Shown here one piece after another: positions 434 to 640 of a stretch of 64,000 nt of DNA. The notes under the pieces were generated by a model. That model was not told the origin of the DNA. It worked only from the letters and a program-made list of their open reading frames with translations, and ran no database searches. The translations under genes were made by a program, and so were the position numbers. The DNA comes from Hemiscyllium ocellatum (taxonomy: Eukaryota): positions 16,416,789-16,480,788 of the forward strand of contig NC_083409.1 in NCBI RefSeq assembly GCF_020745735.1, read 5' to 3'. The stretch's first letter is position 1. Each line of letters opens with the position of its first letter.

Positions 434-640
434 CCCAGTGAGCCTGGCTCCTCAGTCCTGACTGCTCTTAGCTGCTGTGATTGTCACTGATTGGACACTT
501 ATTATTAGAGATTCTGACCACAGCAGAAAGCCCCAGTGTAAAAAATAACTGCAAAGACTGTCAGATCGCAAGGTTGAAACTTCACCAAAAGAGGAAGTGA
601 AAGAAGGAGCTCGGAGCAGCTGGGTATTTGTTACTGAGAC
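434..640 (+). promoter_or_regulatory. Conserved upstream element, copy 1 (candidate kappa enhancer/promoter)
   Basis: ATTGG 490-494, TGTAAAAAA 537-545, Ets-IRF composite GGAAGTGAAA 593-602, E-box CAGCTG 617-622; ~95% identical, no indels, in 4 copies. Confidence 0.55.

Follow-up and report, generated by a model that had tools for sequence, protein, structure and literature searches.

A non-coding block located upstream of the kappa light-chain V genes of sharks is, to judge by its pattern of conservation, a real, selectively constrained and kappa-linked module, and it is probably an immunoglobulin light-chain enhancer in an unusual place, upstream of V. It was studied in a stretch of 64,000 nucleotides of Hemiscyllium ocellatum DNA, hereafter the window, and in nine further kappa loci of galeomorph sharks. 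The conserved block covers about 250 to 630 bases and is bipartite, comprising block A of ~256 nt and block B of ~100 nt, between which there is an insertion-tolerant spacer.

The original prediction concerned four related segments at positions 434-640, 19055-19255, 36100-36295 and 56857-57063 of the window. All of them are present, the first and the last on the plus strand and the other two on the minus strand, and they align without gaps once the minus-strand copies have been reverse-complemented. The predicted length of ~200 bp holds for this segment, but the whole block is larger and includes a 5' extension, block A, the spacer and block B. The parts of the four copies, named c1 to c4 in the order of their positions, are as follows.

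322-411, plus strand: 5' extension of c1, 100% identical to that of c4 (56745-56834), 91-94% to Cetorhinus and Scyliorhinus
412-667, plus strand: block A (core) of c1, identical to c4, 93% to c2, 89-96% to other species
668-841: spacer of c1 between blocks A and B, 71-76% identical
842-947, plus strand: block B of c1, 99% to c4, 88-98% to other species
19019-19351, minus strand: 5' extension and block A of c2, with the ETS-IRF composite at 19084-19093
18462-18562, minus strand: block B of c2, 92% to c4
36104-36403, minus strand: 5' extension and truncated block A of c3, with the composite GGAAATGAAA at 36123-36132
56745-56834, plus strand: 5' extension of c4
56835-57090, plus strand: block A of c4
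57091-57264, plus strand: spacer of c4, 74-76% to other lineages (72% to c2)
57265-57370, plus strand: block B of c4, 92% to c2, 82-97% across species; this part is absent in c3 and in the Chiloscyllium punctatum locus L009

Over the element c1 and c4 are the same, and both belong to a direct duplication of 7 kb with 98.8% identity (1-7036 corresponds to 56423-63466). Therefore, the four segments represent three independent lineages (c1/c4, c2 and c3) and not four independent copies. In c2, a repeat insertion of 1.3 kb (19347-20676) abuts the 5' edge of the 5' extension, and blocks A and B are split by the spacer together with a dispersed-repeat insertion of 287 nt (18716-19003). All the insertions seen are in the spacer or at a border of the block, none of them within A or B.

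The count of 7-8 substitutions and no indels over 171 nt, which had been given earlier, was reproduced, since exactly 7 substitutions and 0 indels were found in each of the comparisons c1/c2, c1/c3 and c2/c3 over this length (434-604 in c1). The neighbouring sequence, which had been estimated at ~80%, was measured at 78.9%, 74.4% and 78.7% over the alignable 5' flank (56170-56744), where 38-74 columns are gapped. In the core (56770-57048, ~280 nt) the identity of the three lineage pairs is 95.7%, 93.2% and 93.5%, and c4 differs from c2 by no indels. The difference between core and flank gives Fisher p values of 1e-11, 9e-12 and 1.5e-8 with odds ratios of 4-6. Substitution slower than in the flanks, exclusion of indels and the lack of a coding or RNA-structure signal together form the pattern of purifying selection.

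Recent paralog pairs within Cetorhinus, Scyliorhinus and Heterodontus gave a result of the same kind, with 95-98.5% identity in the element versus 88-95% in the flanks (p from 5e-4 to 4e-10). Between these genera the flanks are 80-87% identical to each other and block A 89.5-95%. Shark genomes change slowly and the flanks are already at 80-87%, so the excess of conservation among these three genera is modest. On these figures, the strongest contrast is that found in the old paralogs of the window and between carpet sharks and the other orders.

The kappa genes found in the window downstream of the blocks are the following.

6619-7041, plus strand: kappa V1 exon, unjoined, with J1 at 7514-7540; downstream of c1
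11093-11548, minus strand: degraded kappa V2/J2 (V2 at about 11548-11198); downstream of c2
63049-63504, plus strand: kappa V3 exon, germline-joined to J; downstream of c4

The frame of the joined gene V3J3 is open from the leader intron through J. No C exon was found anywhere in the 64-kb window. The block had been expected 5' of V and in V orientation wherever a V is present, at a distance of ~6-7.5 kb; indeed, for each of c1, c2 and c4 a single V follows in the same orientation at a distance of about 6-7.3 kb. The wider statement that every kappa unit has such an element is correct for the three V genes of the window and fails for c3, an orphan in a decayed module that has no V.

The copy c3 derives by deletion from a module resembling that of L009, in which the V region was replaced. 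The deletion has taken the last base of the E-box and all sequence 3' of that base, so the spacer and block B are absent, and the Y-box is mutated (ATTGG to ATCGG). At positions invariant in four outgroup species there are four private changes in c3, three in c2 and two in c4; those of c3 include one in the Y-box and one in the spacer of the composite site. These changes would fit relaxed constraint after the loss of V, with numbers too small for a test. With the same small numbers, the orphan is about as well kept as c2, which means conservation without obvious decay after V loss.

V1-J1 and V2-J2 are arranged tail to tail, and their J-proximal intron copies are inverted (7590-8097 versus 11076-10568). 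Runs of N are located near this pair, at 10554-10566 and 12693-12858. Either a true inverted duplication or an error of assembly could account for the arrangement.

The comparison with other sharks was based on nine kappa loci, each taken with 10 kb of flanking DNA, from six species of four orders, all of them galeomorphs: carpet sharks, Lamniformes, Carcharhiniformes and Heterodontiformes. The loci were those of Cetorhinus maximus (L001, L006), Heterodontus francisci (L002, L007), Scyliorhinus torazame (L003, L008), Hemiscyllium ocellatum (L004), Stegostoma tigrinum (L005) and Chiloscyllium punctatum (L009). When the open frame of V3J3 was used as a query, the best matches were kappa gene models of C. 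punctatum (92% and 90%). Co-location of the element with kappa V genes in other elasmobranchs, suggested earlier as a check, was found in 9/9 loci, with one block per locus on the V strand, and in all nine the block ends 1.7-6.0 kb before the leader ATG. No second copy was found elsewhere in these loci, including the 10 kb beyond C. Altogether, all 12 V-linked copies of the window and the nine loci have the V orientation.

In block A, the window has 95% identity to Hemiscyllium L004, 92% to Scyliorhinus, 91% to Cetorhinus and 89% to Heterodontus. Using a profile anchored on Cetorhinus with four comparisons, it was found that the block, with 90-97% mean identity, reaches the level of the V promoter and leader and is the best-kept non-coding stretch upstream. 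The DNA next to it is 66-84% identical to two carpet-shark sequences where alignable and is otherwise unaligned. The 5' extension is absent in Heterodontus L002. In the C. punctatum cluster L009, which has an annotated gene model, the 5' extension (the element is at L009:5046-5480) and block A are kept (96.5%), and the spacer and block B are missing. The break is at the same point as the 287-nt insertion of c2, which suggests that this site is fragile or prone to insertions. Two NCBI kappa models of C. punctatum, P0001 and P0002, begin within the leader-V intron (MLKPEECS...; compare 63067-63504 of the window), and their 5' ends are therefore probably mis-annotated.

Motifs were read off an alignment of 11 sequences and named after established consensus sequences, so all the sites are predicted ones. 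Those of block A on the plus strand are listed below for c1 and c4.

487-494 (c4: 56910-56917): Y-box CTGATTGG
517-522 (c4: 56940-56945): RUNX-like ACCACA
525-534 (c4: 56948-56957): kappaB-like
539-548 (c4: 56962-56971): MEF2-like
593-602 (c4: 57016-57025): ETS-IRF composite
617-622 (c4: 57040-57045): E-box CAGCTG

The pattern GGAANNGAAA had been claimed for all copies, with one change at an N position. An exact match is indeed present in 4/4 window copies and 9/9 loci, the sole change, in c3, being A for G at an N position. Every V-linked copy has GGAAGTGAAA, and the exact ETS-IRF composite AGAGGAAGTGAAAG is invariant across these copies. By itself GGAANNGAAA is not rare, occurring 10 times in the window versus 3.8 expected from shuffles, and four of these ten occurrences are the element copies. 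CCAAT and CAGCTG, predicted for most copies, are found there, the exception being c3, in which CCAAT is broken by the Y-box mutation and CAGCTG is lost at the deletion breakpoint. The E-box CAGCTG is 14 nt downstream of the composite (13 in Scyliorhinus) and is lost only in this orphan; one Scyliorhinus copy has CACCTG instead, with the E-box still intact.

Other invariant or nearly invariant runs of block A are GCTTTGATCTT (TCF/LEF-like), CCAATGTGTTTCCCAGTGAG, TCACTGATTGGAC (NF-Y Y-box), GACCACAGCAGAAA with the RUNX core ACCACA, and GAGCAGCTG, which is the E-box beyond the composite. The kappaB-like site AGAAANCCCC (reverse complement GGGGNTTTCT) agrees with GGGRNWYYCC at 9/10 positions and in most copies varies only at the consensus N, with further changes in L007 and Stegostoma; the MEF2-like site TAAAAAATAA agrees with YTAWWWWTAR at 9/10. 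Each of these two sites thus has one mismatch, and both were chosen after the sequence had been seen. The kappaB-like site is separated by 4 nt from the MEF2-like site, and the latter by 44 nt from the composite. A search on both strands of ~380 kb for a kappaB-like site, 0-10 nt, a MEF2-like site, 30-60 nt and the composite found this triple arrangement, with its post hoc choice of motifs, in the element only, namely in 4/4 window copies and 8/9 loci. Outside the element, one kappaB/MEF2 pair occurs in the window by chance.

Other readings of the block were tried and rejected. A coding exon is excluded by the lack of a frame open across species, by variable columns without codon periodicity (28/20/15) and by a 1-nt deletion within block A in Scyliorhinus. 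A 105-aa stop-free frame on the minus strand of the block had no match in the protein collection, which has no called ORF of this block. As to a structured RNA, the folding energy is like that of shuffles (z = +0.26 and +0.56), and Rfam gave no match on the element. Weak sub-threshold microRNA matches were obtained only outside it, on a palindromic repeat, a MITE-like hairpin of 135 nt with perfect arms at 57718-57852 (and 1295-1429). Arms related to this palindrome flank the 1.3-kb insertion near c2, at 19357-19412 and 20549-20614. A 41-base pattern of block A had 0 matches in metagenome contigs. The Y-box CTGATTGG prompted consideration of the S-X-Y promoter module of MHC class II genes, and no X-box is present at the required spacing.

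The predicted sites resemble those of known light-chain enhancers. The ten bases of GGAAGTGAAA are also those of lambda-B, the PU.1 site in the Ig lambda 2-4 enhancer of the mouse (PMC4872103). According to Buerstedde et al., chicken, mouse and human lambda enhancers share the order E-box, NF-kappaB, MEF2 and PU.1-IRF4, with a further E-box downstream in the mammalian ones, and these sites are required for hypermutation targeting (PMC3972084). The shark block has putative kappaB-like, MEF2-like and PU.1-IRF sites in the same order, with a downstream E-box as in mammals, and its gaps of 4 and 44 nt are comparable to ~3 nt and ~50 nt (to GGAA) in chicken lambda (PMC3972084). It departs from the lambda enhancers in that the kappaB-like and MEF2-like sites each have one mismatch, no upstream E-box is present, the distance from the PU.1 site to the downstream E-box is 14 nt instead of about 50, and the element is situated upstream of V and serves the kappa isotype.

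The core of the mouse and human Ig kappa 3' enhancer (PU.1 - IRF4/NF-EM5 - E2A) likewise has an ETS-IRF composite followed by an E-box and serves a kappa-type light-chain gene. The distance of 14 nt from GGAAGTGAAA to CAGCTG in sharks corresponds to ~14-15 nt to CATCTG in human and mouse (PMC3972084, Figure S5, machine-read). However, the mammalian enhancer is several kb 3' of C-kappa and single in a large locus, whereas the shark element is 1.7-6 kb 5' of V and there is one for each small V-J-C cluster; beyond short motifs the two have no alignable similarity, and the activity of the shark block is a predicted one. The likeness between shark, bird and mammal is, so far as the motifs indicate, a shared grammar and not alignable homology.

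The block can also be compared with the conserved non-coding elements of developmental genes, being non-coding, ~90% or more identical across lineages and strictly preserved in its internal spacing. It differs from them in belonging to a multicopy, fast-duplicating immune family and in being seen within galeomorph sharks. The shark lineages sampled separated in the Mesozoic.

In our opinion, the block is rather likely to function as a transcriptional enhancer of the B lineage, with one such enhancer for each kappa V-J-C cluster. From motif content and constraint we infer the binding of factors, the activity as an enhancer and the gene acted on, all of them as probable. The GGAAGTGAAA composite would be bound in B cells by an ETS factor (PU.1/Spi-B type) together with an IRF4/8-type partner, and CAGCTG 14 nt downstream of it by an E-protein, and RUNX, NF-Y (on CTGATTGG), Rel-like and MEF2-like factors would occupy the adjacent invariant sites of block A. 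The complex formed would act on the V promoter 2-6 kb downstream, making the cluster accessible to V-J joining if its genes are not yet joined and providing high transcription, with hypermutation targeting as a possible further effect. As each cluster has its own copy of the block, the clusters could be switched on independently.

Several observations are against the enhancer reading. Among them are the modest excess of conservation between slowly changing genomes, the one mismatch in each of the two sites chosen post hoc, the good preservation of the orphan c3 and the presence of a further conserved block next to J (see below). To our knowledge, all known mammalian and avian light-chain enhancers are situated either within the J-C intron or beyond the 3' end of C, and the shark element, located 5' of the leader, is in neither place; its position upstream of V is unlike that of known light-chain enhancers. 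In addition, block B is missing from the annotated C. punctatum cluster L009.

Among the alternatives, the block may be a promoter of a sterile or non-coding transcript directed toward V, or of an alternative upstream first kappa exon, with the Y-box and an A/T-rich run as CCAAT and TATA boxes. An invariant A/T-rich run, which is TATAAAAAATAA in c2 and c3, does follow CTGATTGG at a distance of 45 nt, and an initiator-like TCAGATC is found 24 nt downstream of this run in c1/c4. The V orientation of 12/12 V-linked copies also speaks for a promoter, but fixed orientation results from module duplication and hence is no evidence for direction-dependent function. We regard this explanation as unlikely, because the run is mostly GTAAAAAATAAC, non-canonical as a TATA box, the initiator-like heptamer is unconserved (TCCGATC in Cetorhinus, TCAGAGC in c2) and no part of block A varies more than the putative start region (56980-57010). 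Moreover, the best-conserved motif pair would fall in the 5' UTR, there is no conserved splice donor (CTGGGTATT in c1, CTGGATGTT in c2, deleted in c3), block B forms a separate module beyond an insertion-tolerant spacer, and promoter-like motifs are common in enhancers. Another cis-regulatory role, such as DIVAC-like hypermutation targeting, recombination accessibility, or the function of a silencer or cluster boundary, is likewise of low probability in our estimate. In its favour, hypermutation targeting has been found to depend, in a transcription-independent way, on the E-box, NF-kappaB, MEF2 and PU.1-IRF4 sites of Ig enhancers (PMC3972084). The element is also kept upstream of the germline-joined VJ (63049-63504), which needs no recombination, and is placed at the 5' border of each module. 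Inspection by eye, however, revealed no convincing CTCF-type core of an insulator in the block, and such roles are inseparable from classical enhancer activity by sequence alone.

Conservation without function, by gene conversion and concerted evolution or by a local mutation cold spot in a slowly changing genome, appears very improbable. Paralogs within Cetorhinus, Scyliorhinus and Heterodontus do have derived states in common, which fits recent duplication or conversion, and three of the orders differ little from each other at baseline. Conversion, however, homogenises sequences within a genome and does not lower the divergence between orders, while all cross-order comparisons gave the same borders and the same invariant motifs, all three window pairs gave the same 4- to 6-fold odds ratio, and A and B, unlike the spacer, exclude indels and repeat insertions. 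We give still less credence to the idea of a transposable-element family that happens to be near kappa genes. The clusters are full of repeats, and the start of the spacer gave the impression of a common shark repeat, which was not borne out at the search sensitivity used. The check proposed earlier, a search for copies unlinked to Ig loci, came out in favour of linkage: in ~380 kb the element is not dispersed and has one copy per kappa module, A, B and the spacer being absent outside kappa modules in the 64-kb window and the ~315 kb of the nine loci, while a control repeat, the 287-nt insert of c2, had >30 matches in the same DNA. The block is also without coding capacity.

Further conserved sequences were noticed in the same clusters. 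A second non-coding block of ~450-480 nt is situated directly 3' of J in the J-C intron, at the following positions.

63509-63951: window
7545-8025: window
11076-10568, minus strand: window
12126-12580: locus L001
11553-12011: locus L003
about 10540-11045: locus L004

Between the window and either Cetorhinus or Scyliorhinus this block has 81-83% identity, and among its long invariant runs are CTGTGGT, GGAGTGAAATCA and a CCAGCTG E-box. As a candidate intronic enhancer, it might take the role of main enhancer of the cluster in place of the upstream block. A tandem array with a period of 43-44 nt is present at 60136-60504 (duplicate at ~3700-4080), 2-3 kb upstream of V, and has a counterpart at the corresponding position in the loci of Cetorhinus, Heterodontus and Scyliorhinus. 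It is followed by a well-kept block at about 60600-60917, 82-96% identical to Cetorhinus L001.

Sharks have dozens of small, separate V-J-C light-chain clusters, and it is an old open question how one cluster is activated in a B cell while the rest stay silent. Malecek et al. (2008) put forward the hypothesis of limiting promoter-enhancer complexes for each shark Ig cluster, with no enhancer identified (PMC2435157). In a literature search for shark or elasmobranch Ig enhancers, we found no description of a cartilaginous-fish Ig enhancer. It is conceivable, though in our view doubtful, that the shark block has a common origin with the lambda (and kappa 3') enhancers found in birds and mammals, in one ancestral light-chain enhancer already present in the first jawed vertebrates, the grammar of which would have been kept for >400 million years as kappaB, MEF2, roughly 45-50 nt, PU.1-IRF and E-box, while its position moved; in sharks it would then also be the hypermutation-targeting element of each cluster. 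Being short and sharply bounded, with invariant predicted factor sites and one copy per cluster in four orders, the block offers a concrete target for experiments and makes it testable whether the light-chain enhancer code is older than the split of cartilaginous and bony vertebrates.
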